From Podarcis muralis (taxonomy: Eukaryota), in NCBI RefSeq assembly GCF_964188315.1, contig NC_135667.1:18042001-18106000 (forward strand): a DNA stretch of 64,000 nt, read 5' to 3'. The position numbers and the translations under genes were made by a program. A model generated the notes under the pieces. The model did not search any database, was not told the DNA's origin, and was given only the letters and a program-made list of their open reading frames with translations. Positions 195-46,696 of the stretch are shown here, piece after piece. How positions within the stretch are numbered: position 1 is the stretch's first letter; every line of letters starts with the position of its first letter.

Positions 195-3116
195 GTGGGG
201 GAGGGAGACAGTGCTCCTGAAGGTAGGAGTCTATCAATTGATGAAGATGATCATCCAAATGTCATAGACCGAATGGAGCAAAGAGCATGCAGACCTAGTG
301 GTGGGAGGAGAAAATCCTTAAATAAGAGACACGGGGGAATGATTAATGGACTTCAATGTCTGTACACTAATGCGCAAAGCATGGGAAATAAACAAGATGA
401 GCTTGAGCTCCTGGTACAGCAAACTAAATATGACATAATAGGAATCACTGAAACCTGGTGGGATAAATCCCACGATTGGAATGTAATAATGGAGGGATAC
501 AATCTATTTCAAAGAAACAGACCAGACAAGAAAGGAGGAGGAGTGGCGTTATATGTCAGGGATGTGTATACCTGTGAAGAGATCCAAGATTTAGAACCTC
601 AAAGCCAAAGTGAGAGCATTTGGGTCAAAATTAAGGGAGAGAAGAATAACAGTGACCTCATTGTGGGAGTTTACTATAGATCCCCAAGCCAAACGGAGGA
701 CATAGATGATGCCTTCCTGGAACAGATGGCCAAGCATGCAAAAGGAAGGGAGATAGTAGTAATGGGGGACTTCAATTACCCGGATATTTGTTGGATGTCA
801 AACTCAGCCAAGAGCATAAGGTCAAACAGATTCCTCACTGCCCTTGCAGACAACTTCATTGTCCAGAAAGTGGGAGAAGCAACAAGAGGAACAGCCATTT
901 TAGATCTGGTCCTAACCAATGTTGATGACCTGGTTAGTGGGGTAGAAGTGGAAGGATCATTAGGCGCGAGTGATCATGCTCTTCTGAAGTTTACTATACA
1001 GCGGAAAGGAGCAGCCAAGCATACTAGGACTCAATTTCTCGACTTTAAGAAAGCCGACTTCATAAAGCTTAGGGAAGTGCTGGGTGAGATCCCATGGACA
1101 GTAATACTAAAAGGAAAGGGAGTTCAAGATGGCTGGGAGTTTGTTAAGAGGGAGATAGTAAAAGCACAACTTCAGGCAATACCAATGAGACGGAAACATG
1201 GAAGGTGCCTAAAGAAGCCAGGGTGGCTATCTAAAGAACTTTTAACTGAGTTAAGATTAAAAAAGGATGTGTACAAAAAATGGAAAAGGGGGGAAACCAC
1301 CAAAGAGGAATTCAAACAAATAGCCAGCACGTGTAGACACAAAGTCAGAAAAGCTAAAGCACAAAATGAACTCAGGCTTGCTAGAGAGGTTAAAAGCAAC
1401 AAAAAAGGCTTTTATGGGTATGTTCGTAGCAAAAGGAAGAACAAAGAAACCGTGGGGTCACTCAGAGGAGAAGATGGTGAAATGCAAACAGGGGACACAG
1501 AAAGGGCTGAACTCCTCAATGCCTTCTTTGCCTCAGTCTTCTCCGATAAAGAAAACAATGCCCGACCTGAAGAATTTGGAGCAAATGATTCAGCAGAGGA
1601 AACACAGCCCAGAATAACTAAGGAGATAGTACAAGAATACTTGGCTAGTCTAGATGTATTCAAGTCTCCAGGGCCAGATGAACTGCATCCAAGAGTATTA
1701 AAAGAACTGGCAGATGTGATTTCAGAACCACTGGCAGTCATCTTTGAGAATTCCTGGAGAACAGGCGAAGTCCCGGCAGACTGGAGGAGGGCAAATGTTG
1801 TCCCTATTTTCAAAAAGGGGAAAAGAGAGGACCCAAATAATTACCGCCCAGTCAGTCTGACATCAATACCAGGGAAGATTCTGGAGCAGATCATTAAGCA
1901 AACAGTCTGTGAGCACCTAGAAAGGAATGCTGTGATCACCAATAGTCAGCATGGATTTCTGAAAAATAAGTCATGTCAGACTAACCTGATCTCGTTTTTT
2001 GACAGAATTACAAGCCTGGTAGATGAAGGGAACGCAGTGGATGTAGTCTACCTTGATTTCAGCAAGGCATTTGACAAGGTGCCCCATGATATTCTTGTAA
2101 AGAAGCTGGTAAAATGCGGTCTTGACTATGCTACCACTCAGTGGATTTGTAACTGGCTGACTGACCGAACCCAAAGGGTGCTCATCAATGGTTCCTCTTC
2201 ATCCTGGAGAAGAGTGACTAGTGGGGTGCCACAGGGTTCTGTCTTGGGCCCGGTCTTATTCAACATCTTTATCAACGACTTGGATGATGGACTCAAGGGC
2301 ATCCTGATCAAATTTGCAGATGACACCAAACTGGGAGGGGTGGCTAACACCCCAGAGGACAGGATCACACTTCAAAACGACCTTGACAGATTAGAGAACT
2401 GGGCCAAAACAAACAAGATGAATTTTAACAGGGAGAAATGTAAAGTATTGCACTTGGGCAAAAAAAATGAGAGGCACAAATACAAGATGGGTGACACCTG
2501 GCTTGAGAGCAGTACATGTGAAAAGGATCTAGGAGTCTTGGTTGACCACAAACTTGACATGAGCCAACAGTGTGACGCGGCAGCTAAAAAAGCCAATGCA
2601 ATTCTGGGCCTCATCAATAGGAGTATAGCATCTAGATCAAGGGAAGTAATAGTGCCACTGTATTCTGCTCTGGTCAGACCTCACCTGGAGTACTGTGTCC
2701 AGTTCTGGGCACCACAGTTTAAGAAGGACACTGACAAACTGGAACGTGTCCAGAGGAGGGCAACCAAAATGGTCAAAGGCCTGGAAATGATGCCTTATGA
2801 GGAACGGCTAAGGGAGCTGGGCATGTTTAGCCTGGAGAAGAGGAGGTTAAGGGGTGATATGATAGCCATGTTCAAATATATAAAAGGATGTCACATAGAG
2901 GAGGGAGAAAGGCTGTTTTCTGCTGCTCCAGAGAAGCGGACACGGAGCAATGGATCCAAACTACAAGAAAGAAGATTCCACCTAAACATTAGGAAGAACT
3001 TCCTGACAGTAAGAGCTGTTCGACAGTGGAATTTGCTGCCAAGGAGTGTGGTGGAGTCTCCTTCTTTGGAGGTCTTTAAGCAGAGGCTTGACAACCATAT
3101 GTCAGGAGTGCTCTGA
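195..3116 (+). CDS. CR1 ORF2 endonuclease/reverse transcriptase, uninterrupted (973 aa)
   Basis: EN motifs: YTNAQS, GITETWW, GVYYRSP, MGDFN, SDH. RT motifs: [31 protein letters not shown]. No stops or frameshifts. The frame is open from 90; the first ATGs are at 273 and 339. Confidence 0.96.
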
Positions 3117-4320
3117 TGGTGTTTCCTGCTTGGCAGGGGGTTGGACTCGATGGCCCTTGTGGTCTCTTCCAACTCTATGATTCTATGATTCTATGATTCT
3201 ATGATTCTAATTTTCCTGTATGTATGCATCTCATATGACACATCATATGTCATTCATAAGCATGCAAACCATTATCTGGATTTGATTAGGACTCTAGTAA
3301 GCTGGCTGGCTAGTGCTATTGAGTTAGAAATCTAAATTCTGGTTGTTCCAGGTAGAGGGGATGAATTGAATTCTGAAGTCTTGTGTTGAGCTGTACATTT
3401 TGAAAGCATTGCTAATAACTCTTGCCAAAAGAAAAGGATTTCTCACGAACACAGAGACAATCTCAAGTTTTAAGCACCTGTGCTCAGGCGCACGTAGACT
3501 GACTCAAGTGGAAGAATCTGGCAAAATGTTTTGCCTGCGTATGCAGCAGAAGTGTCCTACAATAGCCAGACACGTGCCCCCCAAAATGGCAAGTGACAAC
3601 AAGCCTAGAGGCATGGTGACAAGCTGGGGGGTCAGTAAGAGCTATTTGGTACTATTTGTACTTTTCTCCCCTCCCCATCTCAGGCTGTTTACAGACGGCT
3701 TATTTATTGTGGTACAAAAAATGTAATTTTTCTACAGTGGAATTATTCGTGCTCATCCTCAACAGGCTCCTTTCAACCTAGATTCAGGTCCTACTGTCCA
3801 CAAGGGTGGGTGAGGTTACTTGATACTTATTTGAAAAGCTTCCCCTTTATAAAATTATCCACTCCTTTTCCTCCCTGCACATACCCCAGGTGAATGAAGA
3901 AGGAGGTCGTGACTGATCTTGGTAGACGTCCACCCACAACATCATTGTGCAGGTGTGGACACACACGCCCCTATTGTTGGGACCGCCAACATCTGTTTTC
4001 TTGGTATATCTCTAGAATGTTTGGAATGGGAAAGCCATAGAATTTGGGAGAGGTGACACATCCTATCCAGCTGTGTGTGTGTATAAGGAAGGAACAAAAG
4101 AAGCAGTTTTAGGGACGGGCAGAAAAGAGGCAGGGTGTGAGCTGAAGTCTCTTAAAGCATCTTAGGGTACAAGATGCTTCTGCCTGGAGATATTATATGA
4201 GCTGGCATATCTACAAACTTGTAGGAGTGTGCATATTCCTTTTTTCTGTTTGTGCTTTGCACTGTATATAAATACATACATGTAAATATGTAAATAAAGC
4301 CAATATTTGAAAGATACATA

Positions 4321-4562
4321 CAGTGGTACCTCAGGTTAAGTACTTATTTCGTTCCGGATGTCCATTCTTAACCTGAAACTGTTCTTAACCTGAAGCACCA
4401 CTTCAGCTAATGGGGCCTCCTGCTGCTGCCGCGCCACCGGAGCACAATTTCTGTTCTCATCCTGAAGCAAAGTTTTTAACCCGAGGTACTATTTCTGGGT
4501 TAGTGGAGTCTGTAACCTGAAGCGTATGTAACCTGAAGCATATGTAACCCGAGGTACCACTG
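4321..4562 (+). mobile_element. Tc1/mariner (Tigger-like) MITE
   Basis: TIRs CAGTGGTACCTC...GAGGTACCACTG with TA on both sides. Near-identical copies at 55009 and 56564. Confidence 0.85.
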
Positions 4563-4944
4563 TATTACAAAGGCACAATGCTGGCTGGAATGGATAGGAG
4601 TTGTAGTCCAAAACATCTGGAAGACATGAGGTTGGGGAAGGTTACAGTAAGCCATGAGCCATGGTTTACTGTGAACAAGCAGAGTGCTATTGCATGTGCT
4701 GGAATGGTCTTGCTTCACTTCTCCGCTAGCAAGAGCAGGAGCAAAAAATGATGAGCCTTGGTTTGCTGTGGCCTCTGAACCAGTGCTTATGGTTTGTTTC
4801 TCTCAAACAAACCATGATCAATCAGGAAGCCAAGAACAAACTTTGGCTTCAGACTGTGTTTATTGGAAGGAGAAAAAGTACTGAGCACTGGTTTTGTACT
4901 TCCACGGCTGCTGCTCCTACTAAGTTTCTAGCTTCCTGGGTTGT

Positions 4945-5292
4945 CCAGGGACGCGGACTTATAAAAAATATTGGGGGGGCCCGGGAAAGCTCATGAATAA
5001 TAAATAAGCTCATGAATATGCAAATAAAGTGGCGCCGCCTCCTCGTGAGCGAATAGGGGAGAGCGTGCTGCGCCTATTAATCAGCTCCAAAGGAAATTGG
5101 GTGGAGCTTTTGCTCGGGAGGGAGGGCAGGAGGCATGCAGCCCGCCCCTCCCTGTGCATTTTGGGCTGGGGGAGGGGCGGCGATGGCGCTCTGCTGGAGG
5201 GGCGCCAGAGATTATTGGGGGGGCAGAGCCCCCCCAAACGAATTTTTGAGGGGGCTCGGGCCCCCTCAAGCCCCATGGAGTCGGCGCCTATG
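4945..5292. mobile_element. GC-rich non-autonomous DNA transposon-like element
   Basis: GC-rich island in AT-rich flanks with imperfect terminal similarity (CAGGGACGCGGAC versus reverse complement CATAGGCGCCGAC). No clear TSD. Confidence 0.4.
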
Positions 5293-5354
5293 GGGTTGTC
5301 CAAATGTAGTCATTCGCTCCTCTAAAGGAAAAGCCAACCGCAGGCAGCTGTGTT

Positions 5355-5418
5355 GCAGCTTCATCCCAGTTGTGACAGTGGGAAGCTGCAGCTTCATCCC
5401 AGTTGTGACAGTGGGAAG
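5355..5418. repeat. 33-bp tandem duplication
   Basis: GCAGCTTCATCCCAGTTGTGACAGTGGGAAG(CT) occurs twice in tandem. Confidence 0.9.
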
Positions 5419-8400
5419 TAGCAGAGCGCAGAGATAGGACTTCACACGGTCACCATTCTGGTAGGTGGCTGAGACTTGGCCAATAAGATAAGTCAATTGA
5501 CATCCTGGTACCAGCTTGGCATAGGGATGGTGCCAGTCTAGAGGGCAAAATGGCATCTGATGCTCACAGATGTTGCCAGCTCCTTGCCTTGAGCTGCTGT
5601 GCGATTCCCCACCCCAACCCTGCTGCCAGACTGTGCATAAGGAGGGATGTACATATATCAGCTGAAAAGCATTGTCTCTCCTAGCTACAGATGGCCCCCA
5701 ACATACAAGTGTTGTCCAGAGAACTTCCCTGCTTGCAAAACTGTCTTTTGGAATGGCAGCTGCAATCAGCTGCTTGCACTGAGAGACTCTATGCTCCTGG
5801 GGGGCCTGGGTAACCTTTGAAAATGCACTGCGTTGATCTCTTCTTGATCAGCTCCAGGCTGCAGGGCAGCTGCAACATTTCAGGTCAAGGGCTCCCAGAG
5901 TGAATCCGCTGAGGTGCCAGGGTAGGAAAGGCTGCAGCCTAGTCGCCATGCCTGCCCTTCTCCCTCGGACCCTCAAATATGACATGTAAGCAATATACAC
6001 TGCCCCCCCTTCCAATCTTCCAACCCGAGGCTTTCTCCCTGCTCTTCCTAGGCTGCCTCTCTGCCAACCCTGGACTGCAGCCATCTCTCTGAGACAGGAA
6101 AGGCCCCAGATCGCATTTCATGACACTCTTTCTGCATATAAACAGCCGCCCCCAGCCCAGAGGCAGCCACATGGCAATGCCAGGCGAGGGATCCCTGCTT
6201 TTTGCAAGTTCCACATTGGATTCCTCACTCCCACCCTGAGCTTATCCGGCCTGGAGGAGGGGGGCTGGGTATTGGCATTTTTGCTCAATTAGCTGATGTT
6301 TCCCAGTGTGTGCAATATCATCCAGTTTCCATGGTGATGGGAGTGCCACGGTAACCAACAGGGCCTCTTTTCTTGTTCGCTACCTACTTCTCCCCATGCC
6401 ATGCTGGCATGAGGAGTTGCACAAGGACAGGAGTGGGAAGAGACCCCAGGAACAGGGCTGGGCCTAGCTCGTTTGCCTCCACAGGGGAAATCAATTCCCC
6501 CCCACCCCTTCTCCCCTTTCATCTCAAGAAATTTCAGCACACGTCTTCAGATCCTGTAGCGAGAAGTAAATTAGGCAGGTCTTAGCAGGAAGTGCCATTG
6601 AAAGGACAATTTTCTTGCCATCATGGGCACGTGGGCGTTTGACACCTAGGTAACGCCTGCCCTGGATTTAGTGCCAGTTCTTTCTCCACTTCCTCTTTCT
6701 CCACCTCCTCCTCCTTTTAGCAGCCCTCTGGAGGCCCAAGAAGCCAATCTTTTCTCTGGTTATGTTCACACAATATTTTACCCTGAGGAAACGTTTTTGT
6801 GTTGCTTCAATGACAGACACTACGGGCATGCTAAAATGCTTAAGGAGACAGGCATAATCCCATCGTCAATTACGGAACCCTTTTGGTTAGGCCTGCCAAC
6901 TCCCTTGATTCTGTTTCTCAACATTTCTGTGTCAATAGCCCCATGAAAACACGCCCTAAGGTGAAAAAGAAGAGGTCTGGTTCTCAGGTCTTGGTGGCTG
7001 AGCATACAGCAGCCCCCCAAACTTCTGCTGTCTGGTAGAGGATCCATCTTGCAGCAGTAGGCCATGCTACTACATGCAAATAAACAAGGCCTACTCAGTT
7101 GCCACCCCAGAACTGTGGGATGTCCTTCAATCAGCTGTGTGCTTGGCTCCTTTCCTTCTGATGTTCCACAGGCATGGACACTTTCATGTTGCTAGTCTGG
7201 GTCTGTTGTCACTGTTGTCTTTCTGTCCCTTTTTGTGTTTTCATTGTTCTTTGCTTTATTTGGGTTGGTTTCCATAGCTTTTAATGTTGTTTTGATTTAC
7301 CCTTCTGTAAATCACCTCAAGCCCTTCGTGGTGAAAGCCAGCGTGCAAATTTAGTAAAGACAGATCATCACCACCATCAATAACAACAGCAGGGTTGCTT
7401 CCACCGCCAATGCCAAATTGCACCGGTAAAACATGAACTGGGCCTAAATTGGTGCTCTCTGGGGCTTCAGCTGCAGTGTTTTCTAAAACAATGTTTAGGG
7501 GTCCTCTCATTTTCCTACTCATATTGAAAGACTGCCCCTCAATAAGGCCAAACTTAGATTTACAAAATGTTTAGGGCTATCCCTCCAGAGAAAAAGGACT
7601 CTTGAGCTGTACACCTTAATCTGGTACTTGAAGCTGACCTCACACTCTTCTTTGTGCATGGTAAGGAATAGCAGCATGTAACATCAGCCCCCATAACTGG
7701 TCGGTTTCTGGACTCGTGTGATCTTCCTCTTGCTGCTCTTTAGCTTCAGATCTAGATCTGGGTACAACCATTGTTCTGTCCTGACTCTTCCAAGCCAGCT
7801 TCTGGATGCTTCCAGACAACCTGCTTTATTGAGCATTTATTCTGATTTGTTTTCAGGGAGATGAGACAATAGTGGCTAATTAATGAGTTTTCATTCTGAT
7901 TTGTTTTCGAGGTTCAGTGTTATTGCGCACTTTCCAGTGCATTTCCCGCTCACATTCCTTATTGCAAAAAGACTGGTCTTTTGGAGAAGTGGATTTGTTG
8001 CACAAGCCCTTCCAATCAACTATAATTGTGCAACCTGAATTTGCTGGTGTGTGACTGAATCCTACCCAGAAATAGTGACAGTCTGAAAGCTTCCTCTGTC
8101 TCGTATTCTCACTCTCCCACCCATACCTTGTTGCCTGCCCATCTCTTATATTTGCTTCAAGGATGCGACTTTTTTTTTTAAAAAAAAACTGCTCTAGGAA
8201 ACCTGGGAGTGCTGAGCAGTAAGCATGCCCACGGTGTTGTCTTGAATGTTATGCCCCCCTCCACTAGAGTTGGGAAAGTTAGGGCCCAGAAGATGCATAT
8301 TCGAGATAAAATTTACTGCTGCTACAGTCTTCTACCTGCAGTGCCTTTACCCCGCCTCATAATTAGGACAGTCTTGCTGCAAACTCATGAAAATAACTCC

Positions 8401-17155: not shown

Positions 17156-35150
<17,995 letters not shown>

Positions 35151-37789
35151 AACCTCTCTGAAAATCTCAAGGCAGGGGAAAAAAATACTGGGAGGATAAT
35201 CTGGAACAGACTGGAATATTTCCTAGAGGAACAACAGTTTATAGAGAGATTATTCATGTGACAGGACAGAATAGTCAGAGATGGCTATAAAACTGTGGTT
35301 TCTAGCTTTTAATAAAATATACTGGGAGACTTTTCTATCTGATGAACACCGACCCCAGTGAACTGCAGAATGAGATCCTAAACTGTGACAAGCATGTTTT
35401 AGTGAGATTTTAAGTTTCATCTGCCAATAAGGGAAGCCAAACACTTTTCCTTCAATGCAACTACACTAGAGCAATTCAAGTTTGTGTAGGATGAACTGGG
35501 AACAAGCAGGAGGTTTGTAAACTTACACTGATGAGCTGCTCAAGGGATGCTGGGTGCAGCTACTGAGACAATAAAAAGAATATATAAACGATTATACTAG
35601 CAGAAATCTGGAATTACATTTATCCAGCCCTCAAATCAATGTTTGTAAAAATAGAAGACATTCATACAGAACAGTTGATGCTGCGTGGTTTTTTCCCCTT
35701 AATAATAATAATAATAAATTTTATTTATATCCCGCCCTCCCCAGCCGAAGCCGGGATCAGGGCGGCTAAAATCAATAAAATAATAAGTTGAACCATAGAC
35801 ACTAGGTTGTATTACAAAAAATCTCCCTCCATGATCAAAATACAGTATTTTGGCACTGGATCAAAGCAGCCTGCAGAATATGCTTTGACGTTTAAGAGGT
35901 TAGACTAATTGCACTGAACCCCACTGGTTTGGTAAAGGGAAGAGTTTAGAAAGGAAGAGTGACTGTTCCAAGGTTTATACACACCCAGGGGTTTTGACCC
36001 AGGGCAGATGATAAACAGCATGCAAAAGACATCTTCTGTAAAGTAAAGCAAGGCAAGGAAATCCTTCCCTCCCTCATTGGATCTAGAAAAAGGAAATGGA
36101 AATTAAAAGAGGGAACTGGAAAGAGATTCATACATGCTTGAAACTAAGCTACAAAAAGGGAGAACAGGCACAACCCAGATGATTTATTGAAGGCCGGTCC
36201 ATCTGTGACTATTACCCATTTGTTCAAAGGCTCCAGTGTTCTGCCACTGCAGTGTCCTAAAGCAAGTGGGAAGAGATGCCTGAGACTCATTGACAAAGGG
36301 AAAAAATAACATACTGTTGCATCATAGAACAATATATCAGCATGGATTGAAGTGAATTATGGTTGCTAGGATCCAGATTCAAGAGAGCTCTCATCTCTTC
36401 AGTTGTTGTGGAGAAGGGAAAATTCCAGCAAGGTGCAGATTCTCCAGTTGCTTCGTCTATGCTGATAGTGGAAGAGCAGCTTGAGGCAGCAAAATATTCG
36501 CTCTTGTGCCCCTTTTAAAGGCAGACGAGTCCTTTGAGGGCCTGGATCTTGTATCCTGCAGGTAGAACCCCCAGCCTCATATTTGTCAGGAAATCAAGAC
36601 GCCAATAAGAATCTCAGGGTTTGTTTACACTGGACTTGCACCCGTCTCTCTACTAATGGAGAGCCTCCCACATGATGCTGCCCTGCATCCTTCCCCCTTT
36701 AAATGCAGGGTTTTTCAATCCTGGCTGTTTTGTTTTGGACTTTCCAAGGAAGAAAAAAACAAACAAACAAAAAACCCCACCCTTCCTGCCTGTCTCCCCT
36801 CTAAGACAACACTGGGATGGGAAGGATCTCATCTGGATGCCCCTCCCATTATTGGGGAGACAGGCAGGTACAAGTCCACATTTTTTGCGGCAGTCCTAGT
36901 GGCCCAGTCCTAGGATTTCAGAAGCCTTCTTTCAAAGAAATGTCTGCATCAAAGGGAAAGCAGTTCTCCAGCACTTAAGATGCAGGATATTTTATCATGC
37001 AACACGTCTACCCCATCACTGCACCAATTCGAGTATTTAGTGCAGTTCAGATTGTGGCTGCACAAATCTATTGGCTAGTACCAATGATTGCATCACTAAT
37101 CAGAGACACTATCTTCCCCCACCCTTTTGATAAAGCCAACAGCCCCGAGGGAAGATGCCCACCGGCTGCATACTAAGCGTTCCTTACAAAGTAGCACAAA
37201 TTACACAGGCTTCCACAATTCAAGTTATCTTCCTTTCTCTTACTGTTAAATAAATGTTTGGTGTGCTCCAGTGCTGGGAATCCATTTCCAAAGCTCCTTT
37301 AAATACTTTCCTCCATTAGCTATTAACACCAGGCATAAAAGTGCTAGGTTATTAAGATGCCAAAGAAATGGGGGGGGGGGGGGGTTACACACAAAAATAT
37401 GGAAGTTGCTCCCTCTAGAGGTTTGATCCCTAAAGGCACCTCTTTTCAAGACCAACAACTCCCAAGTCTGACGGATCAAGGTAGTAATGCAGGGCACCCA
37501 ATACATTCACTTTTTGGGGGGAGAAGCTTGTTATAATGAAACCAGCACCGTTCAACAAAGTCCACCTGATGCTGGAATCCAGTTTCTTTCACGGCATCAG
37601 GATCCTTGCAAAGGCAAAGCAGAACTCGTTATGGTTCTTGCAGTGCCACACAGTTCCTTGCTTGCTGTGTTTGCAGGCTGATAGGACAAACGATAAGGAC
37701 CAGCTATAAAAGGGAGGGGCAGAAGACAACACACTCAAGATATCCAAGGGCCATAAAACAGAAATCCAAAGATAGGAAGCTACCTTCAG

Positions 37790-37916
37790 ACTAGTGATCC
37801 ACCCGCGTAGGAAGCTGCTTTTTATACCGGTTCCCCGGCCAGTAAAGTGAGATGAGCGCCGCAACCCCAGAGTCATCCGCGACTGGACCTAACGGTCAGG
37901 CGTCCCTTTACCTTTA
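37790..37916 (+). mobile_element. 5'-truncated Sauria SINE (subfamily A-like)
   Basis: GAGATGAGCGCCGCAACCCCAGAGTC...ACTGGACCTAACGGTCAGG...TTTACCTTT tail. Confidence 0.8.
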
Positions 37917-38419
37917 GACCAGGTAATTTTCTGGACTACACCAGTTCAGACTGCAGGTGGGGGAAGGACCAAATTTCAATGCTCCCCTTGCATTAAAAAA
38001 ACAATTCATGTTTGTGCATATATGCATATACACAGTTTCTCCCTCTGGAGATAGCTTAACTACATCAAGAAGAATAACCAGAATTCTGTCCCCTCCTTCT
38101 GTGCAATTGTAACTCTCAAAACATTGCCAGCTCATCTGAGAGCCATGCAGCAAACAAGGCCAACCGTGAGGTGGAAGTTCTAGAAGTCAACACCGAGGAG
38201 GGCTGGGAATGTCCCCTGACTGAAACATGGACAGCAGCTGCTAGTCAGTGCAGGTAATGCTGAGCTGGGTGGACCAATGGTCTGGTTCTGTTTAAGGCAG
38301 CTTCCTTTGGGGGACAGTAAATCCTTGCCTCCTGACAACTATGCACACACTAAATGTTTAAAACACATTTGGCACACATTCTTTCCCTCAAATAATTCTG
38401 CGCACTCTAGTTTGCCCCT

Positions 38420-38520
38420 CTGAGTTACAATTCCCAGCAACCCTTAGTGAACTACAGTGCCCAGAATTATTTGAGGGAAAGAATGTGCTTCGAAAGCGCT
38501 TTAAATGTATATAGCATGTA
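38420..38520. repeat. Short dispersed repeat (ACAATTCCCAGCA...ACTACAGTGCCCAG...GCTTTAAATG); related copies near 27190-27370, 42975-43100, 47865-47970, 51580-51745, 53310-53375, 53830-53940
   Basis: The same motif set recurs at these positions on either strand. Class not determined. Confidence 0.65.
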
Positions 38521-39043
38521 CACAGCCAGTAGCTTGGAGATTTCACCAAGCTCATTTTTTTTTTAAGCCAGCCTTTGAAACAATAATACCCAGTGGAACA
38601 AAATGCATTCTTGCCCACGTACAGTTAAGCCTCAGGGGTTTCCCAAAATGGGCGGTGCAAATCCACTGGGACTGAGAGTTACTTACTGAAGACTAAAGCA
38701 ACATGGGAAAAGCAGAGTGGAGAAACCAGCAGAGAGAAGTGGCCTGGAGGTGTACAAAAGCTGAGCAGAAAGATATTGCCACCTCCAGACAGCATCAACA
38801 GCAGCTTTTCTGGAACTAAGCAGATCTTGGTCTCGGGAGTGCCTGGATGGGAGACCACTTTGAAACCCCACACAAACCACTTTGAGCTCCATTCTGTACT
38901 AAAGGCAGGTTATAAAAGCAAGACATTTGAAAAGCAAGTGGAGTGAGGCGTGGTACAGAGTACTCTTAATCTTGGGGAGGGCTTTTAAATATTGGGGTTT
39001 GTTTATTTTGCCCTTTCCTGCTGTTCAAAAGGAGGGTTAAATA

Positions 39044-39100
39044 ACAAAACAACAAAACAAAACAAAACAAAACAAAACAAAACAAAACAAAACAAAACAA
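39044..39100. repeat. (AAAAC)n microsatellite
   Basis: Seen directly. Confidence 0.95.
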
Positions 39101-39852
39101 GGTCTCCTTATAGCAGGTCAGACTACAGGCCCTTTATTGTCTACACTGCCTGCAGTGGCCTTTCCACATCTCAGAGGCCTTTGCATCAGCTGCTATCTGA
39201 TTCCTTTGTGCTAGAAATATTGGGGAACTGATCACAGGACCCCCTTCGTTTAGAGCATGTGCTCCGGCCACTGCTTCCCACCCAGATCCCTTTAAATCAG
39301 GCAGACCAACAGGAGTCACCAACCTTTCAGGGCCAGGGGGCACATGTGGAATTATGAGGAAGTGCTGACACGGCGTGGTATAACATGAAAGGGATGCCAC
39401 ATCCAAAGGAGCATAAAAACAGCCGGGATCACAAAAAGCAGCGGCCATGCCTCACAAAAGAATGTGTATCAGCCACTGCCATATACACTCACAGAGAAAA
39501 GCTCACTGAATCTCTCCTCTGCTCAGAATGGATGGGAAGTTGGGTGTCCAATCCTGGCATCCCGAAAAATATGGGCACATTTAAGGGTGTGTGTTCGAAG
39601 TAAGAGAGCAACAAAGCCAACCCAAACAGGAAATGAGCAGGTACGGCAATCAGGCTCTCATGCATTATGGATTTTTGAGGTGATATTTACCGAGACATTT
39701 TGTGAGATGATATTTACTAAGACATTTTGCCGGAACCGTATGATGCTATGGCAGGCACCATGGGGCGAGCAGGTGCCGCATTGACAACCTCTGAATAAAA
39801 TTAGGCCTGTAGATTATTTGCAAGTTGCTTCTTGGAGATCAGATACAAACCT

Positions 39853-42800
39853 TCAATGACCTAGAAAAGCATAAAATTAAGGCCAAAGCTTGCCAGGCTG
39901 TGGGTCCTGTAGCTCTCCTGAGAGAACACAAGGTCAGGCTGGAGGAGAGAAACACTCACCTGGGTCCAACAGCACAAGGCACCGGAAAGTCCCTTTGCCG
40001 GAGGGTTTGAGCCTGATCCCAGGTAACACCTCCAAGAACTTCAGGCTGTCACTGTAGCCTCGCTCCAAGCACAGTTTCCACAGCTTGACCTTGTGCTCCT
40101 TCCACACCAGGGCCTCCAGCTTATCCAGACGCAAACCTAAAGGAAACTGGCCCAGAGTGCTTCGGAGGAGAGGGATCACATCCACACCACCTGAAAGATA
40201 CAAAGAGGCCTCGATGATGATAAAAAGGCTTTTAAGTAGGACTCTGCATGCCCTCCCCACCGATCCAGTGTTCCAGATCTGTCCTGGGCAGACTTGACCT
40301 GGATCTGGGCCCCAAACTGGGGCCCTAGCGCACTGTTTAATTGTGGTTTTAAACCCTATTTTATATGTGGTCCAAGGGCAGGGGAAGAGACACAGACAGG
40401 CTGCCTGCACTTCCTCCTTCTCCTCCATCCTGCTCCTTGCCACCCGATTACCACCCCTTGGGACAGCTCTAGATGACTTTGGGTGGACCTAACCTGGGGC
40501 TGCCTCAAGCTGCTCCAGGCAATCAGCCCAATTTGGCTCAGGACCTAGAATTCGGACAGAGTGGCCCCACAGCCCTACTTTTTAGTGTTGTTTGGAATGG
40601 ATCTCAGTTACCTGGAACAGCTAGCCCATTTGTCAGTGGGTGCTAAGTGTGGAACCAGTGCTTTACTTGCACACAAGTTTTTGTACTCTTCATGCCAAAT
40701 TCCTCTTGATTATTTCTCGACTATACTACAAACTGTCAAAGTCACAGGACTCCTGACTTTTATTATATTTCTTTTCCCTTAGCCTCATTAGGCTTCAGTT
40801 CCCATTGCAACTGCTAAAGACCTCTCTCCAGTTAAGGAAGTATTTACAGAACCTCCGATCAGAAATTAAACTGAAACAGGCTTCATTAGGATGAGGGTAT
40901 TCTTCAGAAAGCTGGATGATTTTCTTCCTGCTGCACACCTGCTGACGGTGGGGAAGGTATGGCCAGCCTGCTCTACACAGAACGAAGTGATAAACGAGTG
41001 TGCTGAACAGAGAGGACAAACTGTACCTCTTCACACTGCAAGTAAATCATCTCATTTTTGAAAGTTTCCCCATGTTAAGATTTCTCCATGATGATAAATT
41101 CAGCATAGTAGGAAAGGGCTGAGGAAGCACACAGCTACAGTCTATGTGTTCTATTTCCTGAGATGGGTGGGTGTTTTTTAAAGGATAAGTATGCAAAAGT
41201 GGACAACCAACCCCACCCTCCTGTAATCTGATGCAGTCCATTCCCCCACTTCATTCCCTTGAATGTGTAGCAGTAGGCCACACCTTCTCAAACAGACCAG
41301 TCTCCTTGTCTTACCTTCACCATCTCTCCCATTCTAGCATAAAAACCACACGTTTTAGATCTCCTATTTTTCCATGCTCACATACCAGGGTCCCTTCCAA
41401 AGAGCATACAAACATTACTAGTCAGCTCCTCCATGCATCTTACTTTGCCTTGCAGAAGAAGATTCCCTTGGCCACTCATAGGCAGGGTCCAGCTCGTCTG
41501 AGGTGAAATCAAAGGGATGATAAGCAGCCCTGCGTGAAGGTTTCTTGCACTGGTGTGTGGACAAAGGCGGAGCTGTGGAGCAGGCTGGAGGGGGCGCTGT
41601 GGGGCAGACTGGAGTAGAAGCTACAAATCATTTGGATACAAAACATTAAAAAGTCAAGAATGTCTGGAATCCCTATTTTCACATTACGTATGCATTGAGT
41701 TGGATCCTAAAGGTGTCTTTCCACTAGCAGAAAGCCTATTCCTGTCAGAGAAGGCCTATTTCTTCCTTAGCAGAAAACCGCTGTATGAGGAAAACCAACA
41801 CCAAATCCACGAGTTCCTCCAACTGCACACAGGCTTAGTCTCAAGCGAGACCTTTTTTATGGCCTTCTACATCTTGCTCGTTATTAAACATCATGATCGT
41901 TACTAAATTTATTCCCCGCCCTTCACCAGCAGATCCCAGGGCAAATGACAACTACACTATTTAAAATTCAAAATAAACAACAGTTAAAGCAGATTAAAAT
42001 TACAGGAATAGGGTGGACCCTGGGAACACACATCTCATGAGCCAAAGCCCAGGGTAAAAAAGTGTGTCTGCAGCATTTGCCAGGAGCTGAATTGTGAAGA
42101 AGCCAGACACACCTCTGTGGGGAGGAAGTTCAACAACTTGGGGCTGCCACAGAGATTGCCCTTCCCTGAGCCACCACCCCAAACTAATTAAAGTATTATT
42201 ATTCAATAATAAGATTTTATTATTTTTCCATGTTGAAAGCCACCCCAAACTTCTGAGGGAGGTGGAACTACCAAGAGGGCCCCATCTGCTGATCTTAAGA
42301 CCCCTGGAGGGTTTGTAGGGAAAGAAGCAGTCGTTGGGGCCTAAGTCATTTAGGGCTTTCAACATTAATGTGAGCACCCTTGAACTGGACCTGGAAGCAA
42401 AGAGTACGGCCTATGTTTTCCTCATGCACTGTTTCCTTCATGCCAAAATGCAACCCTGCTTCCCCCCATACATTATGGCACTACAGCCTAAGTAGCCTTC
42501 CATTAACTCTGGCACAATTGTTCCCGGAGGAGCACAAATGCATTTTCACCTTCCGCTCACGCTTCTTTAGATTAATCCAAGCCACCCGAAGCATGAGAAA
42601 AGGGGACATAGCATGAGAAAAGGGCACAACCAGTTTTACGTGAGGAGCAAATGCAGCCTGGGGACCCTCCTCTCACCTAGCAAAATCAGCGACAGACACA
42701 TCGCCACGCAAACCCATCTCCCCACAACTTCTCTTACCTCTGGAGAAGCTGCAGGTGTCCCAGCTCAGGGGCTGGATTTGGCTCCAAGGCCTTTGTATGT

Positions 42801-43440
42801 TGACCCCTAAGCCAGAGGCTGCTGTTATGAATAACTAATCGAAGGCCCCATTTGGACAGTAGCAGGTTGCTTTAAACCCAGAGTGGCTTAACAAAGCCAA
42901 AGTGGTTTAACAGGCGGGATAATAAATGTACAAAGTAAATAATAAATAAGCATTCAATCCCCCTTTATAATGAGCTCTGGGAATTGTAGCTCAGAAGGAG
43001 AAGGGGGGGGTGTCTCCATACAACTCTCATCACGCTTAACAAACTACAGTTCTCAAAGAGTCATTGCTGGAAACCTATTTAAAGTGTCTTAAATGTTTAG
43101 CGCAGATGGGGCCTAACGTTAAGTAATCTTGAATACACGTTAATCAATAGGAGTTACCACCTCCATGGAGACAATCCTTCTTTGCAACACCCATATCACA
43201 CTCCTGCTGCATCCCCCATCTTTAAATCAAATTTAAAGGAAAAAAAACAGTTTCCCCACAATTAGAATAGCTCCACATACTCTTCTCTGGTGGTAGAGAG
43301 GCCTCCGACTCGACTGGATGAACTGGCGAATCCATCCGTACTCTTTTATAAATAGGTTGTTCTTCCTCAGACGCTGGGCGTTTCTGACAAAGGTCTTCTT
43401 CCGTGGATCTCACCACAACTTCCAGGAGCGGTTTTTCCAT
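39853..43440 (-). CDS. Putative uncharacterised LOTUS/OST-HTH-domain protein; core exons 43440-43281, 41620-41444, 40190-39960, 39860-39853 (191 aa)
   Basis: Strong Kozak ACCATGG with an upstream in-frame stop. All exons have canonical AG/GT sites and join in phase 1. The 231-nt exon encodes a LOTUS-like winged helix. AATAAA on the minus strand at 39133-39138. Confidence 0.6.
39960..40190 (-). CDS. LOTUS/OST-HTH-like domain exon
   Basis: tctttgtatctttcag|GT...CCAG|gtgagt, 231 nt, phase 1-1. GVDVIPLLRSTLGQFPLGLRLDKLEALVWKEHKVKLWKLCLERGYSDSLKFLEVLPGIRLKPSGKGTFRCLVLLDP fits the LOTUS pattern hhRShh...G h.L..L......G[YF]..h..hL..hP.h. Confidence 0.72.
41444..41620 (-). CDS. Pro/Ser-rich linker exon of the LOTUS gene
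   Basis: atttgtag|CT...CAAA|gtaaga, 177 nt, phase 1-1, open: STPVCPTAPPPACSTAPPLSTHQCKKPSRRAAYHPFDFTSDELDPAYEWPRESSSARQ. Confidence 0.6.
41900..42365 (-). mobile_element. Older L2-type LINE 3' fragment
   Basis: TTATTCCCCGCCCTTCACC...CCCAGGGC tail-like motif, plus TTCAACAACTTGGGGCTGCCACAGAGA..GCCC resembling the L2 3' region. Confidence 0.5.
43281..43440 (-). CDS. First coding exon of the LOTUS gene
   Basis: MEKPLLEVVVRSTEEDLCQKRPASEEEQPIYKRVRMDSPVHPVESEASLPPEK; donor AAGA|gtatgt, phase 1. Confidence 0.6.
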
Positions 43441-44009
43441 GGTCCTAATCTGGGCCTCAGATCATAACATCCTCTCACCTCCCTCCCCAAGCTTGCCTAA
43501 CCCTCAACTCTTTCCCAGAAAATACAGCTACCCTTGCAAGTCAGGGTACTGGGGGGGTGGGGAGCACAAAGCCCACCCACATTCTCCTCCAAGCCAGACA
43601 AATCTATTTCTTTAAAAGCAAAGAAAAGTAAAATATTTTCAAGCTGAAGAAAACCACGAACAATTAAAGCGGGGGGGGGGGGGGGATGCGCTTCACTACT
43701 GATGCCCCTTTAATAAACCTGCATTTGTATGGGTGTGGCAAGAGTCAATTAACCCAAAAGGGTGTAGCTTGAAAAAGGGCCATACTCAGACCCAATCACA
43801 ACTTATTTAAAACCACAGCCTCACCTCCTCAGCCCATTGCAATAGAGGGGGCACTTTACCTGCATAACAAGCAATAGCTACTTTGATAGGAAGCAGCTGA
43901 GCCCTCTGCGGTTACAGGGGAAAAAGAGGATCCTTTTCACATCTACTGCTGGCAAGTCAGGTGTCCCACATCTTATATTGGTGCAGCTGGTTTTTCCTGC
44001 CTAAGTGTA

Positions 44010-44305
44010 GAAGCTTACATTTGCCAATCTGTTAAGGTCATATTGAATCCTGATTCCATGTTGAGTGGCATTGGCTACCCCTCCCGGTTTGGTGTCACCT
44101 GGAAATTGGATGAAGGAATTGAGGGGATGCTCATCAAAGTCATTTATAAAGAGGCTGAACAACAATGGGCTCAGGATAGAACCCTGTGGCACCTCACTTG
44201 TCCCTTTTTTTTTGCAGGATAACTAGGAACCATTAGTGGACACTATTTGGGTTTGGTCAGTCAACCAGCTACAAATCCACCTAAAAGTTACCTCGTCCAG
44301 TCCTT
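44010..44305 (-). mobile_element. Degenerate CR1 RT fragment with an internal micro-inversion
   Basis: PQGSILSPLLFSLFIND...GDTKPGGVAN is homologous to ORF2 at about 2230-2400. Confidence 0.85.
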
Positions 44306-46696
44306 TACTGTTGCGTACAATTAATTATTATCAAATATAACTATCAATTGATGTTCCAGTCACTTGTCATTCATTTTAATACATTAATATTTTTGGTTGA
44401 AGACCTTTTCTCTGCATGCTTTTCCTACCACAAGTTTGCAATGCATACATCCCAACTTTAGAACGCTCTTTCCAAAGAGGTACGACTGGTGCTGACATAA
44501 CATTCTTTTCATTAGTAGGTTAATATATATTTATTTTTACAGGACATAGCAGAAGGACTTCATAATTATTTATATATGTTACAAAACTTATATACCGTTT
44601 GGAAAAAGAAACTACACTGCTTGTTGGTAGACACACACAGGTGAAAAAAAAGAATAAAATTATCAGTAAAATCAGTTAAAAGAAATATTTAAAACATTCA
44701 GAAAACAAACTAAACACATATCAACTGTCTATAAAATTGGATAGGCTTGCCTAAAAAAAGAGTTGCAATCAGACTCCAGTTCAGAAGAAATCAGACTAGG
44801 CAAATCTAAGGCAAGTTTCTTCTGTCTCTGCCCCTTTATGGAGGAGAAATATTGAAGAGGGTGCAATAGGTCATACAAGACCTGTGGATAGATGGGGAAT
44901 TCTCAGATGGTTCAATTCTAACCTTTGGAAGAAATGTTTGGGAGTTCTGGACACTTGAGCTTAGGAAGGAGGAGGCAGTGTTTTTGAAGTGTGCTTAATA
45001 GAACTGAGGCTTTCAAATTTAAGTGCCACCTCACAAACTGGCACAGAGGTGCAGGTAATGCTTAAAACAGCTTTCAGCTCAATATCCCGCCTGAAGCAGA
45101 GTCCAAATAGTGCCCCTGCCTCCAAGCCCAACACTTACATTTATTTATTTTTAAAATACCCCACTGAACAATTCAGATATTAATTCCTGCCTTCACCTTA
45201 TACCACTACGGGTCACCTCCAGGTGACCCTCCCTGCCCCGTACTCAGTTAAGTCTACCTGCACAATACAGCCACTCCATGAGGCTTTGTCAGTGGGTTCC
45301 CTGCAGGAGCGTGGTCCCTCAGCAGCGGCCCTACCATGACAAACCCTTGATACCAGTCGTGCCCTTCCCCACGCAATGGTGCCAAAGCAGGCTACTTCAC
45401 AGCAAGGCTGGCTGTTAAGGCATGTATTTCTTAGTTCTTATCCTCCATCCTCCTCCCTCAAATGCCCAACAGGCAATTGTCTAAGTTGGCATGACACACC
45501 ATTATTTTGCATCTAAAAGGACAGAACAGGCATTTTTCCTTCCTCTCACTTGCACAGTCGTGATTTCAACCAATCATTACAGTATTCCTATCCACCAGTG
45601 TGCCCTAACTAGCAATTTATACCAGCCCCCTCAAACATTAAAGGCAAACCTGGCTAACAGAATTTTACCTGAGAAGGCAGTCATTTTTAATATGCTGCAG
45701 CTGCCCCTTCTCTTGTTCTGCCCCCCCCCCCCACCTTCAGGCAGAGAACTCTCCTCTTCTGGAGTTGCTCCCTTTTTTCTAAATGGTTCTTATTAACAAC
45801 ATGATAAAAAATGATCACATAATTCATATTGTGCCAACATAGTGGTATGTGGTTTATCTAGCATTCCAAAAGGAGACAAAGGACCAGTTCTGAACAACAA
45901 AGAACACACATTTCATTCTGTCCCTCCCATCAGTTAATATTCATTCAATCATTTATTGTTATATCCTGCCCTTTGTCTATTCTGGAGCACTGGATGGCAT
46001 AACATTATAAAACAGGAGTTGAACAACATTGAAAATGAATAAAGCATCTAGAGTTACAGCAAAAAAATGCAAAAGAACAGAAGCTGTATATAACTACAGG
46101 ATCATGCATGAAAGCAATACTTTCATGATGAAAACACTTAAACAAATAAGAATTTCCGCTCCTCTCACTGGCCTGAGGTGCTAGTGTCTATGTCACTCTG
46201 GAAATCAGTTGTGTGAAGGCCGAGATTGTGGTTACTCACTGGTGAGGCAAAGGCATTCTGTGCCTGCCCACGAGCAAATTCTTCTTGATAATTACTGGAC
46301 ATGATCTAGGACTGAATTATGCTGGTCAAAACTGGTTCCGAGTTCGGCCTCAGGTTCAGCAAGGGGTAGGGGACTTGTGGCCTTCCAGATGTTGCCAGGC
46401 TACGGCTCCCATCATCCCTGACCAATGGCCATACTGGTTGGGGCCAATGGGAGATGGAGTCCAACAACATCTGGTGGCCTGCATGTTCCTTATTCCTGTA
46501 GGCCAAAGCTCCTGTTTCAGAGGAGCCATGATGTGGTGACTGTGAGGTAAATTGGTTGAGGACTGCTGTCTGACAATCTCTGTGTGTGGTTCCCAATCCA
46601 TCATTATGTTCCTTCCCATCCAAAGCAGCCACTGGAACCTGCGGTTTCAAACCAGACTCGGTCAGCTTAGCGGGATCCTGCTGATCCAGGATCCCT

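Follow-up and report, generated by a model that had tools for sequence, protein, structure and literature searches.

Within the 64,000-nucleotide stretch of Podarcis muralis DNA analysed here (hereafter the window; contig NC_135667.1, positions 18,042,001 to 18,106,000), LOC114582295 is a real, spliced, transcribed and protein-coding gene of the minus strand, and the peptide encoded by its third exon is a LOTUS domain, on the basis of a predicted structure and of transitive homology and without a direct sequence match. As a whole, the data are on balance best explained by a nuclear protein that would employ this minimal LOTUS domain as an adaptor from RNA to protein, and that would represent the squamate member of a tetrapod family. 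The gene itself was already annotated, and what is new is the domain assignment together with the family context; a full-text search found no published work on DUF7515, a Pfam family matched by its relatives, or on six LOC identifiers of the gene.

Gene structure and transcripts

Four minus-strand stretches (43440-43281, 41620-41444, 40190-39960 and 39860-39853) join in frame to an open reading frame (ORF) of 191 amino acids (aa), with GT-AG borders at all introns and acceptors that lie behind pyrimidine-rich tracts. The start codon at 43440 is the first ATG in frame downstream of a stop and has an A at -3 and a G at +4. The phase-compatible exons, strong splice sites and Kozak start proposed in a first-pass annotation of this DNA were thus confirmed in the sequence. 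Exons 1-3 supply the constant part of the product (189 aa) and are identical to XP_028559051.2; with the tail encoded at 30147, the entire 213-aa product is identical, and the gene is therefore LOC114582295, an "uncharacterized protein" of Podarcis muralis in RefSeq, rather than the unrecognised gene it had been taken for. A search with the LOTUS exon returned "uncharacterized protein" entries from four lacertids (Podarcis muralis, P. raffonei, P. lilfordi and Lacerta agilis), each of which has as many as seven isoforms and none a precomputed Pfam domain, and RefSeq annotates the gene in these species and in many other squamates as an uncharacterized protein. The features of the gene, in window coordinates with lengths in nucleotides (nt), are as follows:

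43281..43440, minus strand: exon 1, coding part (53 codons and 1 base); from the ORF, the Kozak context and the contig of RNA run X1
41444..41620, minus strand: exon 2 (177 nt), encoding a proline-rich linker, the basic patch KKPSRR and the motif DFTSDELDPAYEW; both borders in RNA contigs
39960..40190, minus strand: exon 3 (231 nt, phase 1), encoding the entire predicted LOTUS domain (residues ~115-189); from the model, the structure matches and exon conservation
39853..39860, minus strand: last coding piece Gly-His-stop, a minor or alternative last exon; from the AG acceptor, the frame and a Lacerta agilis isoform
39133..39138, minus strand: AATAAA polyadenylation signal; from the sequence
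36515..36555, minus strand: alternative last coding exon with the tail GYKIQALKGLVCL-stop, giving a 202-aa product; from the X5 contig (1 mismatch in 26) and an open frame
30074..30147, minus strand: alternative last coding exon with a 24-residue tail and stop, giving the 213-aa RefSeq product; from a loose end of the X1 contig, exact match
42114..42365, minus strand: alternative repeat-derived first coding exon of some P. raffonei isoforms; from tblastn, 89% identity

Exon 1 encodes a MEKP-LEVVV start and the basic motif KR-x10-KRVR, which are conserved in squamates and in a 340-aa turtle protein described below. Its 5' untranslated region extends to at least 43900 in the X1 contig, and the exon is thus longer than the earlier limit of 43610.

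Four public RNA runs were aligned to 38000-43900, with assembler contigs as the sole support for splicing. Run X1, from a close relative (organism A), yielded a 1052-nt contig with a depth of 141 that spans 39960-40190, 41442-41620 and 43281-43900 and contains the junctions 43281>41620 and 41444>40190 exactly, and a contig of run X5 (organism B), with a depth of 1214, again contains the junction 41444>40190. These two junctions had been predicted and are thus supported by contigs from two species, whereas the third, 39960>39860, was seen in none of the runs, as X1 and X5 both splice elsewhere: from the donor at 39960, the X1 contig continues to an exact window match at 30147 (tail VEKWCGEAD), and the X5 contig (loose end at 39959) to an exon at 36555 (tail GYKIQALK). 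As such, the first-pass annotation was probably wrong in taking Gly-His-stop as the main last exon; its model is nevertheless an annotated form, namely Lacerta agilis isoform X4 (XP_033025203.1, 189 aa, ending in GH). The AATAAA signal assigned to this end is present in the sequence, but RNA depth was 0 across 38985-39575 in all four runs, and its use is therefore not supported.

The annotated isoforms are alike except for the first exon and a choice of short last exons (39371-39403, 37249-37335, 36518-36574, 35985-36083 and 30034-30205), the tail at 36555 being that of P. raffonei X4 and L. agilis X3. The alternative tails comprise 2-24 residues, are non-conserved and are predicted to be disordered. 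Three short stretches (38450-38494, 42140-42283 and 43012-43052) have RNA depth in all four runs and are flanked by loose ends at either side; they have a 'ctacaattcccag' core in common and behave like fragments of a dispersed repeat that are non-exonic here. At 42140-42283 partly fitting reads with loose ends are many, as such a repeat would give. One 'ctacaattcccag' repeat piece provides the alternative first exon in the P. raffonei isoforms. Beyond the aligned runs, the LOTUS exon is present in RNA-type runs of six organism labels, and expression seems to be sample-restricted, since in organism C only some samples contain the exon. An Rfam scan of 36000-44500 returned nothing but sub-threshold look-alikes of mir-4520.

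The LOTUS domain

The domain was modelled by AlphaFold2 from a 70-sequence family alignment with a predicted local distance difference test (pLDDT) score of ~84, while the full-length model has a pLDDT of 88-91 in the domain and <60 elsewhere, with nothing folded outside residues 115-189. The elements follow each other in the order helix, short strand, three helices and beta-hairpin. In a Foldseek search of the PDB the top 29 matches were all LOTUS domains (Oskar, TDRD7, TDRD5 and Tejas), with MARF1 next and template modelling (TM) scores by target of 0.63-0.78, and the fit to a TDRD7 LOTUS domain had a root-mean-square deviation of 1.6-1.7 Å over 72-73 residues. VIA-align placed eleven LOTUS entries at Z 8.2-11.3 and the best non-LOTUS winged helix at 7.1. 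Among the Swiss-Prot models TDRD5 and TDRD7 rank first, and in the ESM Atlas the feature score to OST-HTH clusters is 0.91, with TM scores of 0.71-0.77. The LOTUS pattern that had been noticed by eye in the 77-aa exon is thus matched by a model that folds as a LOTUS domain, and by best structural matches that are LOTUS domains as well.

Direct sequence comparison of the window protein does not identify a LOTUS domain. The protein has no match, even at an expectation value (E) of 10, to PF12872 (OST-HTH), the profile against which the peptide of exon 40190-39960 was to be checked, or to PF24359 (DUF7515), and phmmer of the LOTUS exon against PDB sequences returned only a chance Seh1 match (E 8). 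Homology is instead passed on through relatives: 20/70 of the homologous domain pieces match DUF7515 and 8/70 match OST-HTH, and the family profile reaches the TDRD7 LOTUS chain 2ly1 with an E of 0.014. The alignment of these 70 sequences has near-invariant L49, G55, L56, L61, L73, G81, L89 and P93, and the core LOTUS pattern (FPLGLRL..KL, GY.DSL.FL and PGI) occurs in all squamate orthologues. As relatives match PF24359 and the window protein does not, we regard the latter as a divergent, non-scored relative of DUF7515.

Because LOTUS is itself a winged helix, the protein might alternatively be a nuclear DNA-binding factor that regulates transcription or chromatin. Forkhead, MarR, PadR-like and linker-histone structures come next among the matches (Z 6.4-7.1), and a basic domain combined with a motif resembling a nuclear localization signal (NLS) would suit such a factor. 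We nonetheless assign little probability to this reading, since all LOTUS entries score above the DNA-binding winged helices, the detectable homology is to OST-HTH and DUF7515, and LOTUS domains are reported to have no preference for DNA G-quadruplexes (G4) (PMC7498356).

Within the LOTUS fold, two classes have been distinguished, extended and minimal, and Vasa binding requires the C-terminal extension of the former (Jeske et al., PMC5458760). In the models no helix of at least 4 residues follows the strand at 183-187; DSSP assigns only a 3-residue turn at 189-191, and the tail has a pLDDT of 32-47. By the definition of that study the predicted domain therefore belongs to the minimal class, and the missing Vasa-binding helix, which had been suspected from the sequence, is consistent with the models and their disordered tails. 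This bears directly on the suggestion that the protein is a germ-granule factor that binds Vasa/DDX4. The closest structures by Z are indeed extended LOTUS domains (N-terminal TDRD7, TDRD5 and Tejas), and the neighbourhood includes a gamete gene, the SPACA4-like ORF of the Ly6/uPAR type. However, the defining C-terminal helix is missing, with 2-24 non-conserved residues of low pLDDT in its place; the matches to Oskar chains end at about residue 221-224, before the alpha-5 helix of Oskar; and an NLS-like motif fits cytoplasmic germ granules poorly. Activation of Vasa/DDX4 in the manner of Oskar, TDRD5 and TDRD7 is thus unlikely judging from the models, and given the missing extension we consider a Vasa-binding germ-granule role quite improbable.

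Squamate orthologues and the larger repeat family

Single-domain orthologues of 190-230 aa were recovered from geckos (Paroedura, Gekko), from iguanians (Anolis, Sceloporus, Phrynosoma), from snakes (Crotalus, Naja, Liasis, Pantherophis), from Varanus and from lacertids. They were recovered only in Squamata, which agrees with the lineage restriction that had been proposed. Their exon plan is kept: exon 1 measures 160-220 nt, the linker exon ~160 nt and the LOTUS exon 225-231 nt (for five squamates besides P. muralis; 228 nt in the turtle gene), and a short variable tail follows. The order of an Ig-receptor gene, the LOTUS gene and a converging FAM83E is kept as well and is found in Anolis, Paroedura, Lacerta and Varanus as in the window. 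The squamate domains form one clade with a support of 100/98. Pairwise ratios of nonsynonymous to synonymous rates (dN/dS, NG86) are 0.23-0.43 overall, well below 1 in every pair, and for the LOTUS exon 0.17-0.47 in 14/15 pairs and 0.74 in one. Judged from these comparisons, which had been proposed as a check, the gene is orthologous across squamates and under purifying selection.

Two records of the orthologues call for comment. In GenBank the one from Varanus komodoensis carries the name 'Phosphoribosylformylglycinamidine synthase subunit PurL', with which its sequence and position disagree, and this looks like a naming error. In Crotalus horridus there are two copies of 201 aa that resemble each other, one on a 132-Mb and one on a 131-Mb record, and these could represent either a duplication or two haplotype assemblies.

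These data also speak to the idea that the gene is a functionless, transcribed remnant of a decayed multi-LOTUS gene. The many alternative first and last exons, some of them repeat-derived, the non-conserved tails and a constraint that is only moderate (dN/dS up to 0.43) would be in line with decay. Yet the ORF, the exon phases and the synteny are kept from geckos to snakes to lacertids, dN/dS stays well under 1 throughout the pairs, a motif of 13 residues hardly varies among the squamate proteins recovered (17 species), and contig depth is high in some RNA runs. In view of this conservation, a remnant seems highly improbable.

The wider family was found by phmmer against 1.84 billion representatives, which returned 49 relatives, many with 3-8 matched stretches; taxa are named for about half of them, and any absence of the family from birds and mammals would rest on those. 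The larger relatives, present in turtles, alligator, skink, cordylid, agamid, caecilians and salamanders, consist of 2-9 copies of a unit made up of a linker exon and a LOTUS exon. The relatives scanned match PF24359, with the exception of the small Sceloporus and Crotalus proteins, and many match PF12872 in addition; in 7/7 large members scanned the canonical OST-HTH domain comes first, PF12872 matching the N-terminal domain. Only OST-HTH and DUF7515 pass the Pfam cut-offs, and no Tudor, NYN or RRM domain was found in the members scanned.

The turtle Carettochelys has a 340-aa two-LOTUS gene at the syntenic place, converging on FAM83E, with a first exon homologous to squamate exon 1, a 598-aa OST-HTH gene upstream of it, and an 1856-aa member across FAM83E, behind a GSG1-like gene. 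With the 340-aa gene on one side and the 1856-aa gene on the other, family members thus flank FAM83E on both sides. In the Carettochelys stretch, the GSG1-like gene of the claudin family (4096-7932) lies directly upstream of the 1856-aa multi-LOTUS gene (10001-37865), and the name 'germ cell-specific 1-like protein 2' of alligator KYO23532 is probably explained by a merger, as adjoining GSG1-like and LOTUS gene models seem to have been joined. In Tiliqua scincoides, a pair of large genes with DUF7515 and OST-HTH domains (1620 and 1288 aa) is arranged head to tail at 10001-40658 of the stretch fetched; no FAM83E was called in that stretch, which may be a second family cluster in skinks.

Taken together, the homology indicates that the squamate gene is the one-domain representative of an uncharacterized family of tetrapod proteins with LOTUS/DUF7515 repeats, and it keeps its position beside FAM83E. 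A tree of 69 domain pieces had too few columns to name the turtle repeat ancestral to the squamate domain. In the window, the gene holds the sole LOTUS exon of the 64 kb (tblastn with all family proteins gave no second one), and a local tandem cluster like that of the turtle is therefore absent here.

This history would allow a different role, in which the protein is not an RNA binder but a protein-protein adaptor or decoy that competes with, or docks onto, partners of the multi-LOTUS paralogues, or recruits a complex like CCR4-NOT, which the Drosophila LOTUS protein MARF1 is described as binding (PMC6168497). A gene that stems from a multi-repeat family and has retained a single repeat unit along with a short linear motif that is invariant would be well suited to such a task. 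We find it unlikely, as no large lacertid paralogue appeared in the searches or in the window and the conserved basic charge fits nucleic-acid binding better; an adaptor from RNA to protein is the reading that we prefer.

The neighbouring features of the window are:

17156-17707, plus strand: first coding part of FAM83E (SACK1 domain), from the ORF
23882-24334, plus strand: Ly6/uPAR (SPACA4-like) ORF between the FAM83E parts, from the ORF
28939-29550, plus strand: last coding part of FAM83E (SACK1 domain gene), from the ORF

The alternative last exon at 30074-30147 on the minus strand lies just past the end of FAM83E coding sequence, and the transcripts of the LOTUS gene and FAM83E may thus overlap tail to tail. 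At 195-3113 on the plus strand, a 973-aa ORF with endonuclease and reverse-transcriptase domains is ORF2 of a long interspersed nuclear element.

Proposed role and comparison with known LOTUS proteins

Outside the fold, the N-terminal half is predicted to be disordered and is followed by the single C-terminal LOTUS domain. The basic motif KR-x10-KRVR fits the bipartite NLS pattern [KR][KR]-x9-13-[KR][KR]x[KR] and is kept in 9/12 squamate proteins, while K[KR]x[KR], the second half of it, is found in 11/12 and in the turtle protein; the NLS-like motif and disordered linker read from the sequence at first pass are thus found again. The acidic-aromatic motif DFTSDELDPAYEW (DFTSD[EDQ]L[DN]P-x-x-EW) occurs in all squamate orthologues and in no larger relative, and its 13 residues are near-invariant in the squamate proteins recovered (17 species). 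All orthologues have a basic LOTUS domain, its isoelectric point being 9.6-11.3 and its net charge +3 to +10. YEW(P/L) was considered as an LC3-interacting motif and dropped, as the fourth position fits only in snakes.

We propose that the protein would enter the nucleus by means of its basic motif, that the basic LOTUS domain would bind RNA, most likely G-rich or G4 RNA, and that the invariant motif DFTSDELDPAYEW would recruit a partner protein, so that LOC114582295 would act as a small adaptor from RNA to protein. Binding to RNA that is G-rich or forms G4 has been reported for LOTUS domains of organisms ranging from bacteria to animals (PMC7498356).

Several points weigh against this reading. 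A Pfam scan of the three exon peptides and of residues 77-192 found no domain, even at an E of 10, and the LOTUS assignment depends on a predicted model and on transitive homology. Identity between squamate families is ~50-60%, which indicates a fairly fast rate of evolution. Anolis is without the initial KR of the basic motif, and NLS-like motifs are common in disordered basic stretches. Contig depth, moreover, is a poor measure of expression, and in run X14, a deep RNA run assigned to the same species as the best-matching DNA runs, the ~12% of raw reads covered contained zero exon reads.

In a wider and rather doubtful extension, the family might represent a fourth vertebrate LOTUS lineage besides TDRD5, TDRD7 and MARF1, found in non-mammalian tetrapods, built from OST-HTH and DUF7515 repeats and clustered at FAM83E/SPACA4, whose squamate member was reduced to a nuclear single-LOTUS adaptor between RNA (G4) and a partner, with a newly acquired, invariant docking motif and a reproductive role. 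More immediately, the analysis describes a LOTUS family that is conserved throughout squamate history and linked to the multi-repeat proteins of turtles, crocodilians and amphibians, and it allows a set of reptile genes listed as 'uncharacterized' to be annotated with a domain, whereas automatic annotation assigns none to the squamate members. The family would help to time when LOTUS genes were gained and lost in amniotes, and a protein of 190 aa whose only domain is a minimal LOTUS would be a simple system for asking what such a domain does alone.

Studies of LOTUS proteins in animals have focused on Oskar, TDRD5, TDRD7, MARF1 and the nematode proteins MIP-1/EGGD-1, MIP-2 and LOTR-1, all of which are large germline scaffolds. 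The small stand-alone product is unlike TDRD5, TDRD7 and MARF1, as had been noted at first pass, in that it has no Tudor, NYN or RRM domain. The minimal LOTUS domains of MARF1 and the second and third ones of TDRD7 (PDB 5yad and 2ly1) share its predicted fold and its lack of a C-terminal helix, both at Z 8.2, with a sequence identity of 19-23%. However, MARF1 is a protein of ~1740 aa with NYN, RRM and eight LOTUS domains, TDRD7 has Tudor domains, and the window protein has one predicted LOTUS domain and nothing else folded. The extended LOTUS domains of TDRD7, TDRD5, Tejas and Oskar (3rco, 2lh9, 3s93, 8wxs and 5nt7) are the best matches, with Z 8.7-11.3, yet that class has the alpha-5 extension, whereas the window protein is without this extension and without a Tudor or OSK domain, and has an NLS-like motif. 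With its 191-213 aa and no Pfam domains, it also departs from the plan of TDRD5 and TDRD7, in which N-terminal LOTUS domains precede Tudor domains, and the MARF1 plan of NYN, RRM and tandem LOTUS domains was found neither in the window protein nor in the family members scanned.

The true relatives are instead proteins such as Carettochelys LOC142024733, Tiliqua XP_066486183 and Ambystoma XP_069493568, with E down to 1e-41 and 28-42% identity per repeat. The squamate gene and the large relatives have in common the two-exon repeat unit and, in the turtle, the FAM83E neighbourhood. They differ in that the large members comprise 1200-2056 aa with up to 9 domains, whereas the squamate gene has one domain and the invariant DFTSD motif, and in that the squamate N-terminus is shared, among the relatives, with the 340-aa turtle gene only.

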